From positions 10,292,001-10,356,000 of the forward strand of contig NC_043026.1 in assembly GCF_006345805.1 (NCBI RefSeq): DNA of 64,000 bases, read 5' to 3'. The translations under genes and the position numbers were made by a program. The DNA is from Octopus sinensis (taxonomy: Eukaryota). The notes below the pieces were generated by a model. That model was not told the DNA's origin and made no database searches. It saw only the letters and a list, made by a program, of their open reading frames with translations. Shown here in pieces: positions 3,226 through 61,980 of this stretch. The first letter of the stretch is position 1; each line of letters begins with the position of its first letter.

Positions 3226-3800
3226 GGGTGGGCTTTGGTGGAAGTCTTTTATTAATTTATTTTATTTCGCTTCCAAGTAATGTTGTAAACATTAAGCAAA
3301 TAAGGTTTTGGCTTCTAAACATTTCAGTGGTCAGGGTGTCTTTCAGTACATTTCTCAAACTAAAACACGCAACAAACGGGGCAACGATGGAGAGTGCAGA
3401 CGGTAGCTTCCAAAGCTAGAAATAGCAGCTAAATCACACACGTAGCTAGAAATAACAGCCAAATCTCGCACAAACGAAGGACATCTCTCATTCATAAAAC
3501 ATAGAAGAGAAACAAAGAAATGAGGCGCCAAAAACCGAAACGTCTACAGAATTAAAAACATTGAATATTTTCATTGTTTAATACTTACGGAACTGTTTCA
3601 TAAAGGACAGTGTTGTTATGTATGTGTGTGTCTGGTAGTTGAGGAATACATTAGAACTATTATAAATGTATTATTAGCTGATTAAGAGAAATCCACGCAC
3701 CTGCACATTTAACCAGATATCAACGTCAAGCAGGAAGGACGTTTAAACGCGCATGTGTCGGTAGAAAATAGCGAAGGGAGCTAAGTCTCCTTAAATCAAT
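3226..3800 (-). promoter_or_regulatory. Putative ZNF promoter/first-exon module E (U0); equivalents at 8575-9150, 14830-15410, 21178-21755, 28780-29360
   Basis: On - strand: CACATGCGCG (3757-3748), TTTATAAT, then ATGAAACAGTTCC|GTAAGT donor (3588-3583). Donors of the other copies at 8938, 15194, 21542, 29144. Same orientation as the adjacent ZNF exon. Confidence 0.6.
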
Positions 3801-3814
3801 TGGGTTTAATATCT

Positions 3815-4274
3815 TGTTTATTTCTTTATTATTATTTTATCCAGTTTCAGCACACGAGCTGTGGCCAGGCTGGGGCACCGCCATTTGGTGTTGCTACATG
3901 ATTTTACTTGACGAATGCTTTTTAGCACCTGCCATTTGGTGCATGAGAGAGTTCGATGCAGCTGCCCTTATTTGCACCTCCTGCCGTGAAGTTGGTTCAT
4001 CTGGGACACCTGACAGGAAGAGACCCAGTTTTATTTTAAAGATATCTGCATCCACCCCATGCAGGTCTCTCAGGTTCTTCGGGAGGATATTGAAGAGATG
4101 TGGGCCCCTGAAGCCCAAGCTATCACAGAATCTTTTCCTACATCTTGATGGCAAATTTGGAGTCCTTGGCACCACGCAGTGGCACACAGTTCTGGCATTT
4201 GTGTAACTCTCGATGCCAAAGTCTGGGACAAGTCCTTCTAGGATCTTCCGGGTGTATATTATTGCATATCTCTC
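3815..4274 (-). mobile_element. CR1-clade LINE 3' fragment (copies 9165-9625, 15420-15879, 21768-22227)
   Basis: Translates ERYAIIYTRKILEGLVP..SLGFRGPHLFNILP..LFLSGVPDEPT (RT C-terminal region), with (AAT)n-like tail at the left end. Confidence 0.85.
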
Positions 4275-4605
4275 GTCGATAGCTGGAAATAGTAGCTAAA
4301 TCTTGCACAAATTATAGACATCTCTCATCGATTGCTAGAAATAGCAGCCAAATCACGCAAAATTCAAGGAAATCATTCGTTCATAAAACACAGAGGAGAA
4401 ACAAAGAATCGATGCGCCAAAAAACCGAAAGTCTACAGAATTAAAAGCATGGAAGATCTTCATTGTGTAATACTTAGGGAAATGTTTCATAAGGGATAGT
4501 GTTGGTATATGTGTGTGTGTATCTGGTAGCTGAGGAATGCGTTAGAGTTATTATAAATGAATTATCAGCTGATTAAAAGGAATTCGTTCACAGGACATTT
4601 AAGCC
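4275..4605 (-). promoter_or_regulatory. Second, truncated copy of module E (E'); copies 9626-9958, 15880-16212, 22228-22560
   Basis: Homologous to E. Donor mutated to CTAAGT in U1/U2 (4477, 9829), intact GTAAGT in U3/U4 (16082, 22430). Upstream GCGCATG part is replaced by an LTR-like sequence. Confidence 0.5.
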
Positions 4606-4608
4606 ATG

Positions 4609-5115
4609 TGTAACAAGAAAATTTGTAGGATAGATGTCCCTACATCACGTGTGAGAAAAAGGGCAGGGAACTGGGGAAGACGATTAAAAATGTAAATAAA
4701 TACCTGTCGCACAGGCTCCAACAGGCAGCCCCAGCAAGTTGTTAAGGTGAGACAGTGTCACACGACAACTTGCTGGGGGTGCCTGCTGGAGCCTTTGCGG
4801 CCGGTATTTAAAGAGAAGAATTTGATGAGACACTCAGTCACCGGCTGACACTCGCTGACGATACATCGAAGAGGCCTGGGAACAGAAGAAAGAAGGCATG
4901 CACCCAACACCAGAGCTGAAGACACCTCCGAAAGGGGGGGCCCCGTCACGTCAAGACAGTAGAAGAGTAGGGGCCGAAACCGGGCGTGGTTCCTCCTGAT
5001 GATGTCTTCAGATAACTGGATCCTATAAAGGATCTGTTGTGGTAGCAGACCACGAAACACAGTTGTAATTCCTCAAATAATATAATTGCAGATTCACGAA
5101 ATAAATTAAATAACA
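4609..5115 (+). mobile_element. Candidate solo LTR (copies 9961-10467, 16214-16720, 22562-23068)
   Basis: Starts TGTAAC, ends AATAAATTAAATAACA, internal TATTTAAA followed ~25 nt later by TCAGTC. No TSD found. Confidence 0.4.
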
Positions 5116-58521: not shown

Positions 58522-59559
58522 ATGCACAAACGTATTCATACAGGAGAGAGACCTTATCATTGTGATATCTGTGGTAAATCATTCTCTAACAGTGGTCATG
58601 TAACTGTGCACAAACGTGTTCATACAGGAGAGAAACCATATCAGTGTGATATCTGTGGTAAATCATTCTCTAACAGTGGTCATGTAACTGTGCACAAACG
58701 TGTTCATACAGGAGAGAAACCATATCAGTGTGATATATGTGGTAAATCATTCTCTTACAGTGTTCATTTAACTGTGCACAAACGTGTTCATACAGGAGAG
58801 AGACCTTATCAATGTGATATCTGTGGTACATCATTCTCTGATGGTAGTACATTAAGTCGGCACAAACGTATCCACACAGGTGAGAAACCATATCGTTGTG
58901 ATATCTGTGGTAAATCATTCTCTCAAAATAGTAGCTTAATGCAACACAGACGTATTCATACAGGAGAGAAACCATATCATTGTGATATCTGTGGTAAATC
59001 ATACACTCAAAGTATTCACTTAACTGCACACAAGGATATTCATACTGGGGAGATGCCATATCATTGTGATATCTGTGGTAAATTATTCTCTCTTAATTGT
59101 ATCCTAACTGCACATAAACGTATTCATACTGGAGAGAAACCATATCCTTGTGATATCTGTGGTAAATCATATTTTGATGGTAGTACATTAACTAGGCACA
59201 AACGTATTCATACAGGGGAGAGACCATATCACTGTGATATCTGTGGCAAATCATTCTCTCGTAGCTCTGTCTTAACTAAACATAAACTTATTCATACAGG
59301 AGAGAAACCGTATCACTGTGATATTTGTGGTAAATCGTTCTCTCAAAGTAGTAACTTAACTGCACACAAACGTGTTCATACAGGAGAGAAACCATATCAG
59401 TGTGATATCTGTGGTAAATCATTCTCTCACAGTAGTCACTTATCTAGACACAAATATATTCATACAGGAGGAAAACCATATTATTGTGATGTCTGTGGTC
59501 AATCATTCTCTCTTGAAAGTATCCTAACTACACACAAACGTAGTCATACAGGGGAATAA
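58522..59559 (+). CDS. C2H2 ZNF protein ZNF8, 345 aa, 12 fingers, followed by a decayed 13th finger
   Basis: Intact ORF; stop TAA replaces the linker Lys; degenerate finger at 59560-59646. Confidence 0.95.
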
Positions 59560-59809
59560 CCATATCATTGACATAACTGTGGTAAATTATTGTCTCAGAA
59601 TTGTAACTTATGAAAACACAAATATATTCATAAAGGTGAGAAATGAGAAGACTCGTTTCTTGTTTGGTATGAATTTTTAATATTCCAGGTGCCGAGTGGA
59701 ATGGTCCATCTATCTATCTCTATCTGTTCTGCTCTGAATAGCTTACAACTGTTGCTAAATAAAAACCTATATTCTATGAAAGTAAATTGTTTTTCTGTCT
59801 ATCGCTCCA

Positions 59810-60065
59810 TTCAGCCATCTATCTATCTGCCTATCTATCTATATGTCTATCTATCTATCTGCCTATCTATATATCTATCTATCTATCTGCCTATCTATCT
59901 ATATGTCTATCTATCTATCTGCCTGTCTATCTATCTATCTGCCCATCTATCTATATGTCTATCTGTCTGTCTATATATCTATCTATATGTCTATTTATCT
60001 ATCTATCTGCCTGTCTATCTATCTATCTGCCTATCTATCTATCTATCTATCTATCTGCCCGTCTA
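59810..60065. repeat. (TCTA)n-type microsatellite, resuming at 60785-60835
   Basis: Seen directly. Confidence 0.95.
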
Positions 60066-60782
60066 TAATAATAATAATAATAATTGTGTACAGTGCTCAG
60101 GTGCACTACGACTCATCTAAAGTGTATATATAATCAGGTGTAGTTTCGGCGGATTTCGGAAAGCATGAGGGCCTTAAAGGATGCAGTGTCATGGCAGTCA
60201 ACAACTGACGCAGGCAGTTTATTCCATGCTTCAGCAACTCTGAGCGTGAAAAAATGTTTCCGAAAGTCATGGGAGCTGTGTTGTTTTCTGACTTTGTAGG
60301 CATGTCCACGTGTGTTGGACACATGGAGATCAAAAAGGTGTTCAGTGTTGTTGTTGGTGAGGTGGTTGATAACTTTGTGAGTGTTTACCAATTCCGTCGT
60401 CAGACGCCGGAGCTTCAGTGAATCCATGCCCAGGGAAACAAGGCGCTCAGAATATGGTAGGTGTCTGATGGAGGGTATGCGTTTGGTTGCACGTCTCTGG
60501 ACAGATTCCAGGAGGTCAATGTTCTGAGCAAGATAGGGGTTCCAAACTGATGATGTGAATTCCAAGTGTGGTCGTACCATAGCTGTATACAGTTTTAAAT
60601 AGATGGCTGGAGAGCGGCTAACAAAAGTCTTGCTGAGTGATGCCAAGACACCCTCGGCCTTCTTGACAATTTTAGAGATATGCTTTGTCCAACGCAAATC
60701 ACTGCTGACAGTGATGCCTAAGTCACGCTCGCAAGAGGATTTCTTGATATCAGTGTTGTGGAGGGAGTATGTGGACGCAGGG
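60066..60782 (-). mobile_element. CR1-clade LINE, 5'-truncated
   Basis: 187-aa ORF LYTAMVRPHLEFTSSVWNPY..LESVQRRATK..YSERL..LRRL..WNKLP; (ATT)n tail. Confidence 0.92.
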
Positions 60783-61419
60783 TTCTATCTATCTATCTAT
60801 CTATCTGCCTAGCTATCTATCTATCTGTCTATCAATAAAGACGTGAAAACTTGAAAATTTCTGTATCACTCTTGGTGGGAATCCTCCAAATAATTTTTCT
60901 ACTTTCTATAAAAAGGGAAAAAATTCTGGAAAAAAACCCCCAAAAATATAAAACAAAATTGGAGGAATTTTTAACGGTTTTTAAGAAATCTCGCTATGGT
61001 TCGTCAATCTACCAAAACCTCTCCCTCTCACAGGCTGCCTCAGCTTCTCATCCGTTTTTCAATAATTGTGTGTTCTATTCTTCCATCATTTTCCAATTTT
61101 GCCACTTTTCAGTCTCAGCCTCCCGTTTCGCCGTCGCTAATTGCTAATTTCTTAATTATCTCTATAACATAAGGGGGGGATCAGCCATCTGAATGTGGCT
61201 AGGGTCAGGGCGGGGTAGTGGGGGGGGTGTTACTGATGCATTTAGCCCCAGGCGACCATCATCGTCACCAGAAGAGCTGACACCATCTCGGTGTCCTTGC
61301 CAGCCTGCAAAGGGAGATCAGCCTCTTTCTTTTATCAATTCATTCCTCCTATGAGATACATAAAGGGAGATAATTACACACACACACACACACACAGCTA
61401 CCACAAATATTTCAAAAGG

Positions 61420-61980
61420 GCAGGAGCCACGCACGCGCATTCAGCGAACTTCATCCTTTGTTCTGTTACAAGGTTAAATACCCAGGTGCGTGAATTACTC
61501 GGAATCTTCTTCTAATACATTTATAATTCTTATAATGTGTTTCCCTACTACCAGATACACACATACATAACAACACTATCCTTTATGAAGCATTTCCGTA
61601 AGTATTCAACTGTGAAATTATTTCGTGTTTTTAATTCTGTAGAGATTCAATGAATTATGTGAGATTTGGCTGCTATTTCTAGCTATGGAAGGTGCATTGC
61701 CAGGTTAATTCCTTCGTCTTTAAGTTCGGTCTTTGGTGCGTCGATTCTTTCTCTTTTATTTCTTATGGATGAGAGATGGCCTTCATTTGGCTGCTATTTC
61801 TAGCTATGGAAGGTGCATTGCCAGGTTAATTCCTTCGTCTTTAAGTTCGGTCTTTGGTGCGTCGATGAATGTTATTCCTTGTAAAAGAATGGACTCCGCA
61901 ACTGTTGTGGGATATTAGCGCATCGATTCTTTCTTTTATTTCCTATGGATGAGAGATGGCCTTCATTTGGCTGCTATTGC
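61420..61980 (+). promoter_or_regulatory. Orphan module E (+) with a 121-bp internal duplication
   Basis: ATG at 61585, GTAAGT at 61598, then ATTTGGCTGCTATTTCTAGC motifs at 61664 and 61785. Confidence 0.55.

Follow-up and report, generated by a model that had tools for sequence, protein, structure and literature searches.

The 64-kb window analysed here, the whole stretch of octopus DNA under study, raises the question of whether a block of ~375-490 bp that recurs upstream of C2H2-ZNF genes is a mobile repeat or the 5' end of the genes themselves. We consider it probable, at odds of roughly two to one (about 0.65), that the block comprises the promoter and a short, non-coding exon 1 in an octopus ZNF subfamily expanded by tandem duplication, and that it was copied together with the gene units. 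A profile search of the window with nhmmer (376-position profile) yields exactly 14 full copies of this module, the number given in the initial annotation, 12 on the minus strand and two, c57 and c61, on the plus strand (Table 1). As had also been claimed, each of the 14 is co-oriented with the adjacent C2H2-ZNF gene or remnant; the module would track gene orientation automatically if whole genes were duplicated. About 12 of the 14 copies precede the conserved region around the start of exon 2 (block B) and a ZNF exon within the window. E1 and E'1 precede the intron of a gene whose exon 2 lies beyond the left edge of the window, and c61 precedes a rearranged ZNF remnant. Only rearranged ZNF 3' remnants (62521-63174 and 63551-63726) follow c61, so that its gene is dead.

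Table 1. Modules, block B copies, ZNF ORFs and associated features in the window, in order of position.
Feature	Position	Strand	Details
Module E1, gene-proximal copy	3419-3793	-	nhmmer E=1e-115, pattern match; ATG 3601; predicted exon 1 end 3589; GTAAGT intact
E'/LINE fragment junction, breakpoint of the 6.3-kb duplication	4266-4300	-	microhomology GA(G/A)AGAT
Module E'1, distal remnant	4311-4676	-	nhmmer + pattern; ATG 4490
ZNF1 ORF	6501-7505	-	
Block B of ZNF1	7578-8006	-	exon 2 start 7975
Module E2	8769-9143	-	nhmmer + pattern; ATG 8951; predicted splice from exon 1 end 8939 to 7975 (ZNF1)
Module E'2, distal remnant	9660-10027	-	nhmmer + pattern; donor CTAAGT
ZNF2 ORF	11949-13112	-	
Block B of ZNF2	13154-13581	-	exon 2 start 13550
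Module E3	15025-15399	-	nhmmer + pattern; GT at 15194; predicted exon 1 15239-15195 (45 nt), ATG 15207; predicted splice to 13550 (ZNF2); CACATGCGC at -124, TATAAT at -31, CTACCAGA as putative Inr
Module E'3, distal remnant	15915-16280	-	nhmmer + pattern; GTAAGT kept
ZNF3 ORF, representative	18204-19451	-	415 aa, bare C2H2 array
Block B of ZNF3	19493-19924	-	exon 2 start 19893
Module E4	21373-21747	-	nhmmer + pattern; ATG 21555; predicted splice from exon 1 end 21543 to 19893 (ZNF3)
Module E'4, distal remnant	22263-22626	-	nhmmer + pattern
ZNF4 ORF, broken	25292-25822	-	
Block B of ZNF4	25895-26326	-	exon 2 start 26295
Module E5	28975-29349	-	ATG 29157; predicted splice to 26295 (ZNF4)
Block B of ZNF5	34567-34999	-	exon 2 start 34969
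ZNF6 ORF, frameshifted	40008-41947	-	
Block B of ZNF6	41968-42402	-	exon 2 start 42371
Module c44, proximal to ZNF6	43893-44257	-	nhmmer + pattern; ATG 44061; predicted splice from exon 1 end 44049 to 42371
52-bp minisatellite	45014-46121	-	21.3 copies; TRF
Module c46, distal to ZNF6	46071-46404	-	nhmmer + pattern; ATG 46243
ZNF7 ORF	53701-54582	-	
Block B of ZNF7	54619-55085	-	exon 2 start 55054
Module c56, upstream of ZNF7	55951-56375	-	nhmmer + pattern; ATG 56113; predicted splice to 55054
Module c57, upstream of ZNF8	57486-57833	+	nhmmer + pattern; ATG 57670; predicted splice from exon 1 end 57682 to 58096
Block B of ZNF8	58065-58517	+	exon 2 start 58096
ZNF8 ORF	58522-59559	+	
Module c61, most diverged copy	61422-61823 (profile match 61422-61702)	+	nhmmer; ATG 61585

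The signals within the module are arranged in a highly regular manner. The pattern ATGAA-N8-NTAAGT has 14 matches in the window, always within a module and with the spacing from ATG to donor free of indels, in agreement with the invariant spacing described initially. The donor reads GTAAGT in 12 of the 14 copies, again as described; the CTAAGT shared by the copies at 4490 (E'1) and 9842 represents a single mutation because these two are recent duplicates of each other. GCGCATGYG has nine matches in the window, against 0.26 expected, and all nine lie inside modules, c61 carrying the variant CGCACGCGC in its place. None of the four E' copies, E'1 included, contains GCGCATG, as noted previously, but they are not truncated: they align over positions 10-375 of the 376-position profile, and it is their diverged upstream part that has lost the motif. 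The string TTTATAAT, ascribed to all copies, is found in its exact form in only 12 of the 14, with variants in c46 and c56. Its additional matches at 2297 and 34975 were rejected as modules, the latter being an exon-2 acceptor site. The intronic 21-mer GATTTGGCTGCTATTTCTAGC is present in every module in one or two copies (45 matches against 0 expected, all oriented as the modules), and the 52-bp minisatellite is an expansion of the intronic repeat that carries it.

Block B comprises a branch point, the TTTCAG/A acceptor and a non-coding leader, followed by the ZNF ORF. In all eight window genes, its homology starts ~30 nt upstream of the invariant AATTTCAGA, at a CTRAY-like branch point, and the same start is seen in Octopus vulgaris loci, including more distant subfamilies. 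The module lies upstream of, and in the same orientation as, this conserved exon-2 acceptor and the ZNF ORF, so that the initial proposal that it forms the 5' end of the ZNF cassette is probably correct; the junction suggested for c57, 57682^58096, has the right coordinates. Module and block B are collinear in seven of the eight window genes, and only the content of the intron differs (413-3859 nt). The remaining gene, ZNF5, has an intact ORF (33446-34546) and block B, but the ~4.9 kb that extend upstream to the 3' end of ZNF6 contain no module. The ORFs of ZNF4 and ZNF6 are broken, yet their modules are kept.

The 14 copies are not independent because the E and E' copies were multiplied by a recent ~6.3-kb tandem duplication. 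They represent only seven lineages, with inter-lineage identity of 58-80%, whereas E1-E5 are 98-99% and E'1-E'4 96-99% identical; among deep paralogues, module identity (58-80%) is lower than that of block B (80-93%). E' ends exactly at the breakpoint of the tandem duplication, with microhomology to the LINE, and the same E'/LINE junction is seen again in units 2-4; upstream of E5, the LINE continues and there is no E' copy. E' is a remnant that arose at this duplication junction and decays at the neutral rate. Genes with two modules in series, as reported initially, do exist, but they are not a design feature, given that the four E'+E pairs reflect one event; c46 and c44 form a second, independent pair. 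Among the other lineages, c46 has lost the -31 TATA region through a deletion, c56 has a 75-nt insertion at the Inr-like site bracketed by a perfect 16-nt direct repeat, and c56 and c57 are arranged head-to-head.

In the four young units, only 7 of the 493 sites of E are variable (1.4%), and none of the 83 sites from the TATA box to the donor, compared with 6.3% in the LINE fragment, 5.5% in intergenic sequence, 5.0% in E' and 4.5-4.9% elsewhere in the intron. Variability is thus ~4-fold lower in E (Fisher p 4e-5 to 3e-3), and the drop coincides with the block boundaries set by the deep paralogues. Past the donor, the intronic part of E has 3 variable sites out of 245, over ~250 nt. The most conserved 20-mer across the seven lineages, TGAAACAGTTCCGTAAGTAT (0.96), covers the stretch from the ATG to GTAAGT; next are a block within the predicted intron, at +27 to +46 (0.93), and TCAACTACCAGACACACACA (0.92), in the stretch of the Inr-like CTACCAGA. 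The gene-proximal copy shows constraint that points to maintenance by purifying selection, and the distal E' copies would be breakpoint by-products in decay.

The same organization recurs at a second locus. In O. vulgaris L003, the order module, 52-bp minisatellite, block B and ZNF ORF occurs twice on the same strand (nhmmer E about 1e-112 and 1e-116 for the two modules), and the module core has 4 mismatches in 131 positions against 40 in 423 in the flanks (p=0.016). Identity along the O. vulgaris units is mosaic. An intron segment in L003 shows higher identity (96.7%) than the module does (about 91%), which indicates that gene conversion shapes identity in these arrays; conversion could also contribute to the low diversity of E.

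Under the promoter and first exon reading, an NRF1-like palindrome, (C/A)(G/A)CATGCGC, would lie at an upstream distance of ~90-200 nt, near -120 in the majority of copies, and the promoter would also contain one or two TATAAT boxes and the Inr-like CTACCAGA. The predicted first exon, ~45 nt long and non-coding, would end at a strong GTAAGTAT donor, followed by ~250 nt of conserved proximal intron that includes the 52-bp repeat. This donor is predicted to be spliced to the invariant branch point and TTTCAG/A acceptor, which would open a ~470-nt leader (block B) with many upstream ATGs before the single ZNF coding exon. What the sequence shows directly is the number of copies, their collinearity with block B, the conservation of splice signals, the closure of the reading frames, the lowered variability and the recurrence in O. 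vulgaris; transcription initiation, splicing, NRF1 binding and uORF translation are inferred. The start site is not pinned because the distance of TATAAT to CTACCAGA varies (-31, -22, -44 and -47) and c57 and the O. vulgaris copies have an altered Inr-like motif.

The conserved ATG was rejected as the coding start since block B is interrupted by stops in every frame and contains indels of lengths not divisible by three; the start of the ZNF ORF lies ~470 nt downstream of the exon-2 acceptor. Rather, the module ATG would be the first upstream ATG and, in the spliced form, would open an 11-codon uORF. With the predicted splice, its frame closes after 11 codons in five of the six lineages that have both exons, and does so exactly in E/ZNF1-4, c44 and c46/ZNF6, c56/ZNF7 and both O. 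vulgaris genes, with the consensus MK(Q/H/N)(F/S/L)QHQ(M/I/L)T(V/L)(V/T) followed by a stop. A manual count gives ~6 synonymous and 10 non-synonymous substitutions, with no clear sign of peptide constraint. The predicted leader contains 8-12 upstream ATGs, an unusual number for an mRNA that is translated efficiently.

The resemblance to a repeat family, together with the internal minisatellite, invites the view that the module is a mobile element or a derivative thereof (SINE, MITE, solo LTR or LINE 3' transduction) that carried its own promoter and donor and was repeatedly inserted upstream of ZNF genes. The intronic 21-mer does occur apart from modules, as an inverted pair in O. vulgaris L001 (1239-1268 and 1604-1634), block B is found without the module at six other octopus loci, and the modules of ZNF7 and ZNF8 are only 69% alike despite 93% identity of their block B copies. 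Furthermore, an imperfect direct repeat of 28 nt brackets the block in the E lineage, and one of its arms is the 3' end of the neighbouring LINE (p about 0.0025, picked post hoc). Nevertheless, this scenario is very unlikely. A search revealed no common termini, TIRs or TSDs and no outer TSD for a LINE-plus-module insertion, and the upstream boundary of homology varies by lineage. The ZNF8 module is only ~135 nt from block B, which fits a single ancestral contiguous unit, and the discordance between ZNF7 and ZNF8 is limited to block B, as would fit a local conversion tract in an inverted pair. None of the 16 copies (14 in the window and two in O. vulgaris), in a biased sample of loci that were all picked via ZNF proteins, is away from a ZNF gene unit or opposed to it, so that the description of the module as portable is not supported, and the initial interpretation as a whole is supported in part.

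The block could also be a conserved regulatory region other than a start site, such as an enhancer, a silencer or a binding platform for ZNF proteins, or else an internal 5'UTR micro-exon with a CCAG/A acceptor, the promoter being elsewhere. The constraint that persists past the donor, the intronic position of the second-ranked 20-mer and the variable TATA geometry are all compatible with this; TTCCTCAACTACCAG/A looks like a 3' splice site, for which the E' donors upstream of E could in principle supply a partner. The acceptor is not conserved, however, because c57 (CCTG) and the two O. vulgaris copies (CCAT) have lost its AG, and E' is neutral in rate, with the donor lost in two of the four copies. 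Given that GTAAGTAT pairs with an invariant acceptor and branch point at the very start of block B homology, a spliced intron is the simplest reading and the regulatory or micro-exon alternative is unlikely, although somewhat less so than insertion of a mobile element. Finally, nine of the 14 copies are very recent duplicates, the mosaic O. vulgaris units imply conversion or recombination, and several associated ORFs are broken, so the block might have no function and be alignable only through recent duplication and gene conversion, its ATG and GTAAGT kept by descent alone. This, too, is improbable, on a par with the mobile element. Intron and intergenic sequence can otherwise no longer be aligned between deep paralogues, the exceptions being the 3' portion of intron 1, which lies ~170-1,000 nt before the acceptor, and scattered TE copies. 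Conservation is not flat but peaks at the donor and the Inr-like site, the reduced variability of E has sharp boundaries and does not extend to the sister E' in the same units, and the core is protected in L003 too.

Several known systems are comparable to the promoter and first exon arrangement proposed here. In tandem arrays such as the clustered protocadherin variable exons and mammalian KZNF clusters, each unit has its own co-oriented promoter copy. Protocadherin promoters lie in front of coding variable exons, which are spliced to a common set of constant exons, whereas the octopus units are complete genes with their own non-coding leader exon. As in TE-derived alternative first exons, a repeat would provide host exons with an upstream TATA box and splice donor; unlike these, the octopus block is collinear with the gene unit and has no termini, TSDs or off-gene copies. 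A further parallel is with zebrafish znf genes: both are hundreds-strong tandem ZNF families with a conserved transcript 5' end and a shared promoter type. The zebrafish first exon encodes the N-terminal FiNZ domain, whereas the octopus exon does not code for protein and the ZNFs are bare arrays of fingers; the two families share no sequence homology, and the mollusc expansion is independent. A single first-exon morpholino is predicted to target 447 of the 684 chromosome-4 znf (FiNZ-ZNF) genes, its target being the translation start in the conserved first exon (PMC10547256). Four 5'UTR morpholinos cover 25 early genes, and the family shares a "sharp-peak" promoter class with a recognisable TATA box (PMC10547256, PMC6370886). 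The zebrafish family has CAGE and RNA evidence, whereas the octopus start and splice sites are predictions from sequence.

Neither PMC12513265, in which words for promoters, exons, UTRs and motifs do not occur, nor PMC9795677, in which "promoter" is absent, deals with these features of coleoid ZNFs, and neither describes the module, block B, the intronic 52-bp minisatellite or the uORF. The window genes belong to the same family and genomic setting as the coleoid C2H2-ZNF expansions, which form tandem clusters on a few chromosomes and date to ~41 Ma (PMC9795677). The named proteins closest to the window ZNFs are from O. bimaculoides, O. vulgaris and O. sinensis. A 70-90-bp tandem repeat is reportedly enriched in the flanks of octopus C2H2-ZNF genes, a finding ascribed to Albertin et al. 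in 2015. Altogether, the module is a tidy but ordinary case, its copies having probably spread within this octopus ZNF subfamily through the copying of entire gene units, in tandem and with one inversion, without independent movement.

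C2H2 zinc-finger (ZNF) genes of octopuses rank among the largest known gene expansions specific to one lineage, and the window comprises a tandem array of such genes in which an 84-bp periodicity, with one finger per unit, marks eight finger exons (see the table). The encoded proteins are bare finger arrays with the C-terminal end HTGK(T/K)GKG; a Pfam search with three of the ORFs detected C2H2 finger families only, and no KRAB, SCAN, BTB or other N-terminal domain. Three of the eight ORFs (ZNF1, ZNF4 and ZNF6) are frameshifted or truncated, and the modules upstream of these three are intact; the array is a mixture of live genes and young pseudogenes. 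A short N-terminal query retrieves ZNFs of Octopus bimaculoides, O. vulgaris and O. sinensis as the best named matches, and a full-length ZNF protein only generic vertebrate poly-ZNFs. Exact look-ups of four ZNF ORFs of the window in a gene-position collection gave no match. Among named proteins, one from O. vulgaris shows the closest match to a LINE ORF of the window; this ORF is also 70% identical to a 94-aa "hypothetical protein, partial [Escherichia coli]" (P0122) from a 563-bp contig, which probably represents animal (cephalopod-like) DNA contaminating a bacterial assembly.

Coordinates of the ZNF genes, modules, tandem units and other repeats (window numbering, except for rows marked L001 and L003, which are numbered within the respective O. 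vulgaris loci)
Feature	Coordinates	Strand	Remark
ZNF1 ORF	6501-7505	-	frameshifted/truncated
ZNF2 ORF	11949-13112	-	
ZNF3 ORF	18204-19451	-	
ZNF4 ORF	25292-25822	-	frameshifted/truncated
ZNF5 ORF	33446-34546	-	intact, 366 aa
ZNF6 ORF	40008-41947	-	frameshifted/truncated
ZNF7 ORF	53701-54582	-	
ZNF8 ORF	58522-59559	+	
ZNF7 and ZNF8 block B	54619-55085; 58065-58517		93% identical
Tandem units 1-4	3218-8567; 8568-14824; 14825-21171; 21172-28773		partial fifth unit follows
28-nt repeat arms	14852-14879; 15421-15454		bracket the E module
ZNF 3'-end pieces	62521-63174; 63551-63726		downstream of module c61
Insertion beside E1	1236-3217		~2 kb
c56 insertion	56135-56241		75 nt plus flanking repeats
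185-bp unit, tandem	42581-43411		4.5 copies, 97% matches
185-bp element, single	56390-56566; 2956-3120; 46679-46850; 50081-50554		SINE-like
~62-bp repeats	47700-53300		G+C 0.42-0.48
~62-bp repeat relatives	32790-32977; 37466-39180; 13932-14043		
L003 modules	5502-5955; 11114-11559		
L003 block B	7710-8136; 15022-15448		acceptor AATTTCAGAACATC identical
L003 ZNF ORFs	8093-9594; 15405-16580		
L003 185-bp element	4614-4802		92%
L001 21-mer pair	1239-1268; 1604-1634	-; +	inverted, ~340 nt apart

With ZNF8, the simplest gene, as the query, only two 5' blocks were found to be common to the genes, namely block A, i.e., the module (~490 nt), and block B (~430 nt), which carries an acceptor and a leader ahead of the ZNF ORF. 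The two blocks are collinear and only the spacing between them varies, so that the predicted introns span 413 to 3859 nt; in ZNF8, blocks A and B are just ~135 nt apart. All eight window genes, as well as the two genes with modules at a second locus, L003 from O. vulgaris, have the motif AATTTCAGA preceded by CTRAY without variation; the homology between the block B copies begins, in each of the eight window genes, ~30 nt upstream of the invariant AATTTCAG/A, at a branch-point-like TCT(G/T)ACA. With every frame interrupted by stop codons and with indels of lengths not divisible by three, block B is non-coding; the ZNF ORF starts at ATGCAC, ~470 nt past the acceptor.

When the module ATG with its 13 nt is joined in silico to this acceptor, an 11-codon upstream ORF (uORF) results: MKQFQHQMTVV* for the E modules of ZNF1-3, MKHFQHQMTVV* for E5/ZNF4, MKHFQHQMTLT* for both c44 and c46 of ZNF6, MKNSQHQITLT* for c56/ZNF7 and MKHLQHQLTLT* for both O. 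vulgaris genes. The ZNF8 frame extends to 42 codons because of a 4-nt deletion, so that the 11-codon form is found in five of the six lineages having both exons, the two 91%-identical L003 genes being counted as one. By our own count, synonymous and non-synonymous changes in the uORF stand at ~6:10, which is not significant. The context of the upstream ATG (uATG) is weak, with T at -3, whereas the ATG of the ZNF ORF has A at this position, and the predicted leader is 470-530 nt long with 8-12 upstream ATGs. The module ATG was rejected as a coding start given that its frame closes whether joined to the block B acceptor or to tttatag/ATG immediately before the ORF. Because the frame closes and block B is non-coding, the "first exon" can only be a non-coding leader exon and its ATG a uATG; a reading of the invariant ATG as the start codon of the gene has to be abandoned. 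The alternative of CCAG/A as an acceptor, which would make the module an internal exon, was rejected as well, the AG not being conserved, and no conserved donor/acceptor pair for a second intron that would remove the upstream ATGs is detectable in block B.

A profile built from divergent copies of the module identifies exactly 14 full copies in the window. The pattern ATGAA-N8-NTAAGT likewise has 14 matches, all within modules and free of indels between the ATG and the donor, and the donor GTAAGT(AT) is intact in 12 of these copies as well as in both copies from O. vulgaris. The distal copies E'1 and E'2 have CTAAGT in place of GTAAGT; since they are recent duplicates of each other, this counts as one mutation. 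GCGCATGYG occurs nine times, compared to 0.26 expected by chance in the window, and always inside modules; c61 contains a one-base variant, and all four E' copies lack the motif. The description of fourteen copies with the same order of elements, constant ATG-GTAAGT spacing, 12 intact donors and a GCGCATG motif missing from E' is thus upheld by the profile and pattern searches, whereas the motif string originally listed for the copies, TTTATAAT, is exact in only 12 of the 14 copies. Outside the modules, TTTATAAT is found at the unrelated positions 2297 and 34975, the latter being the exon-2 acceptor of ZNF5. The NRF1-like form (C/A)(G/A)CATGCGC is present, 88-203 nt upstream of CTACCAGA, in six of the seven window lineages as well as in the two copies from O. 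vulgaris; a perfect GCGCATGCGC palindrome is found at one of the sites, in an L003 module. Rfam and tRNA scans gave no matches.

Each of the 14 window copies, like the two from O. vulgaris, is located upstream of a gene body and on the same strand, which bears out the claim that the modules track ZNF orientation and behave like the 5' end of the gene cassette. Twelve window copies precede a block B and a ZNF exon inside the window, E1 and E'1 lie ahead of an intron whose gene extends past the left window edge, and c61, the most diverged copy, precedes a ZNF remnant consisting only of rearranged 3'-end pieces. The ORF of ZNF5 is intact, block B is present and the intron is homologous to that of unit 4 as far as 36030, but the profile search detected no module in the ~4.9 kb separating it from the next gene. 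The ~4 kb further upstream (36030-39850) are filled by other repeats.

The 14 copies fall into seven lineages (E, E', c44, c46, c56, c57 and c61) that are 58-80% identical to one another. Self-comparison reveals four to five tandem repeats of a ~6.3-kb unit, of which units 1-4 each contain one gene-proximal E and one distal E' module, with identities of 98-99% among E1-E5 and 96-99% among E'1-E'4. Homology of unit 5 to units 1-4 stops at 29830 (equivalent to 4278), beyond which unit 5 continues into the LINE body and units 1-4 into E'. At this breakpoint (4266-4300, recurring in units 2-4; cf. 29800-29860), the intronic repeat of the module is joined to the LINE ORF, with the microhomology GA(G/A)AGAT common to the intronic repeat (…GGATGAGAGATG…) and the LINE (…GCGAGAAAGATATGCC…). 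The continuity of the LINE in unit 5 and the shared GA(G/A)AGAT together indicate that E' ends exactly at the tandem-duplication breakpoint. Under the simplest reading of these junctions, E' would be a leftover promoter block of the next gene downstream that was caught at the junction and copied with each unit. Upstream of ZNF6, the arrangement c46-minisatellite-c44, with copies 75-78% identical, is a second, older and independent duplication. Accordingly, modules in series do exist as initially reported, but the E'+E pairs stem from one duplication breakpoint and c46+c44 from another event. A ~2-kb insertion beside E1, in the intron, is found in unit 1 only and is missing at the equivalent site in units 2-4. 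Other repeats are interspersed in the array: intron 1 of ZNF6 contains a tandem array of a 185-bp SINE-like unit, which is also present as single copies elsewhere in the window and in L003, and a G+C-richer region of degenerate ~62-bp repeats, with relatives elsewhere in the window and long spurious ORFs in several frames on both strands, probably represents a satellite-like or SINE-derived family.

Across the seven lineages, the most conserved 20-nt window, TGAAACAGTTCCGTAAGTAT (0.96), covers the exon end and donor, followed by ATGTTTTTAATTCTGTAGAC, 27-46 nt into the intron (0.93), and TCAACTACCAGACACACACA (0.92), which includes the YYANWYY-like CCAGACA 31 nt downstream of TATAAT in E, E' and c61. 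Variable sites were compared among the four young units, where neutral pairwise diversity is ~3% (5-6% variable sites). The E module has 7/493 (1.4%), with 0/83 between TATA and donor and 3/245 in its intronic part, as compared with 28/443 in the LINE fragment, 81/1482 in intergenic sequence, 20/401 in E', 6/123 in the next 123 nt of the intron, 19/424 in the intron near the acceptor and 9/426 in block B; Fisher p values for E against the comparator segments range from 4e-5 to 3e-3. The drop in variability matches the block boundaries set by old paralogues, and E' in the same units is unprotected. From these counts, we read the proximal E as being under purifying selection and the distal E' as decaying neutrally, with the caveat that gene conversion acts in these arrays, as follows from the mosaic identity of the two L003 units (intron piece 96.7% vs. 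module ~91%). In the head-to-head pair ZNF7/ZNF8, the block B copies are 93% identical, with the modules (69%) and finger exons (~80%) no closer than those of other paralogues, which suggests a local gene-conversion tract between inverted copies. The predicted core promoter of ZNF7 contains, exactly at the Inr-like CCACCAGA of c56, a 75-nt insertion between two identical 16-nt direct repeats (+ strand: TATCTGGTGGTTGAAA); the structure resembles either a short insertion that generated a target-site duplication or a duplication by slippage.

Short ZNF proteins were used to retrieve seven octopus loci, which together with the window amount to ~227 kb. One of these, L003 (O. vulgaris OX597842.1:22,889,188-22,909,496), contains two full modules (nhmmer E ~1e-116 and ~1e-112) that share 68-75% identity with the window copies and 91% with each other. 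Each is followed, on the same strand, by the 52-bp minisatellite, block B and a ZNF ORF, and both retain (G/A)CGCATGCGCA, TATAAT boxes, the ATG and GTAAGTAT. The module core, from TATA through the donor to +45, differs between the two at 4/131 positions vs. 40/423 in the flanks (p=0.016). In the other six loci (L001, L002 and L004-L007), ZNF ORFs are preceded by block-B-like leaders that have the conserved acceptor, and a module is missing; block B is thus the older and more widespread element, and the module is restricted to a single subfamily. In non-octopus collections, namely JGI metagenomes and prokaryotic genomes, the module core pattern has no match.

Considering its structure and distribution, the module most likely is the promoter and leader exon of a duplicated ZNF gene unit; it is non-coding and probably not portable. 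That it might instead be a mobile element which moved apart from the gene unit has a low probability. Every one of the 16 copies in the window and the seven loci, all chosen through ZNF proteins, belongs to a ZNF gene unit; checks of three lineages revealed neither shared termini nor TIRs or TSDs, and the upstream homology boundary varies among copies. Hence the label "portable" is not supported by these copies. Mobility would accommodate the occurrence of the module's intronic 21-mer, GATTTGGCTG(T/C)TATTTCTAGC, in O. vulgaris L001 (OX597842.1) as an inverted pair without a module; this 21-mer may belong to a separate, possibly MITE-like repeat. The difference between the ZNF7/ZNF8 modules and their far more similar block B copies would also fit but is attributed to the local conversion tract. 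Furthermore, an imperfect direct repeat of 28 nt (GAAAC...ATAAAATAA..TAATAAAGA) flanks the E block on both sides in each of the five E units, its upstream arm being the 3' terminus of the neighbouring LINE; the arms align with a score of 17, compared to 9.8 on average for shuffled sequence (p ~0.0025, for a repeat chosen post hoc). This arrangement brings to mind 3' transduction of the E module by the LINE, a low-probability scenario given that no outer TSD for a LINE-plus-E-module insertion was found.

If the module serves as promoter and leader exon of its gene, RNA polymerase II would start ~30-45 nt upstream of the donor, at a core promoter of the TATA/Inr type that is preceded, at a distance of ~90-200 nt (around -120 in most copies), by an NRF1-like site; the predicted ~45-nt exon would be spliced to block B, and the uATG, together with the other upstream ATGs, might damp translation of the ZNF ORF. 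The position of the transcription start is only approximate because TATAAT is located at -31, -22, -44 or -47 relative to CTACCAGA, depending on the lineage, and CTACCAGA itself is altered in c57 and O. vulgaris. A more elaborate and rather improbable proposal is that the module is a co-regulation cassette in which an NRF1-type promoter is combined with an 11-codon uORF, formed by splicing and controlling translation throughout the subfamily, and with an intronic array of 21-nt motifs (one or two copies per gene, expandable to 21). Under this proposal, the array could be a binding platform, e.g., for the ZNF proteins themselves, and the neighbouring LINE may have helped to reposition the module in the E lineage.

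Among described cases, the zebrafish chromosome-4 znf/FiNZ genes come closest, their promoter and 5' end being similarly duplicated with the gene: the early "sharp-peak" genes share a TATA-box promoter architecture, and the first exons and 5'UTRs are so conserved that a few morpholinos target tens to hundreds of paralogues (PMC10547256; PMC6370886). The octopus module is not homologous to these sequences and its first exon is non-coding; the 5' exons of FiNZ-ZNFs and mammalian KRAB-ZNFs encode an effector domain (FiNZ, KRAB or SCAN) at the N-terminus, and no such domain was detected in the three window ORFs searched. Two papers on cephalopod ZNFs (PMC12513265 and PMC9795677) cover phylogeny and expression and do not mention promoters, exons or UTRs; a literature search on octopus ZNF promoters and NRF1 returned nothing relevant.

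If transcripts confirm the predicted start and splicing, the module would become a sequence handle for one ZNF subfamily, so that many paralogues could be monitored or silenced with one probe, morpholino or CRISPRi guide set, as with the chromosome-4 znf genes of zebrafish; apart from this, the module pattern is the expected product of whole-gene tandem duplication. The same interpretation, if true, would provide a candidate transcription-factor input (the NRF1-like site) and a candidate translational control (the uORF and the ATG-rich leader) for these genes, and the contrast between E and E' would offer a simple rule separating live promoters from duplication debris in such arrays.
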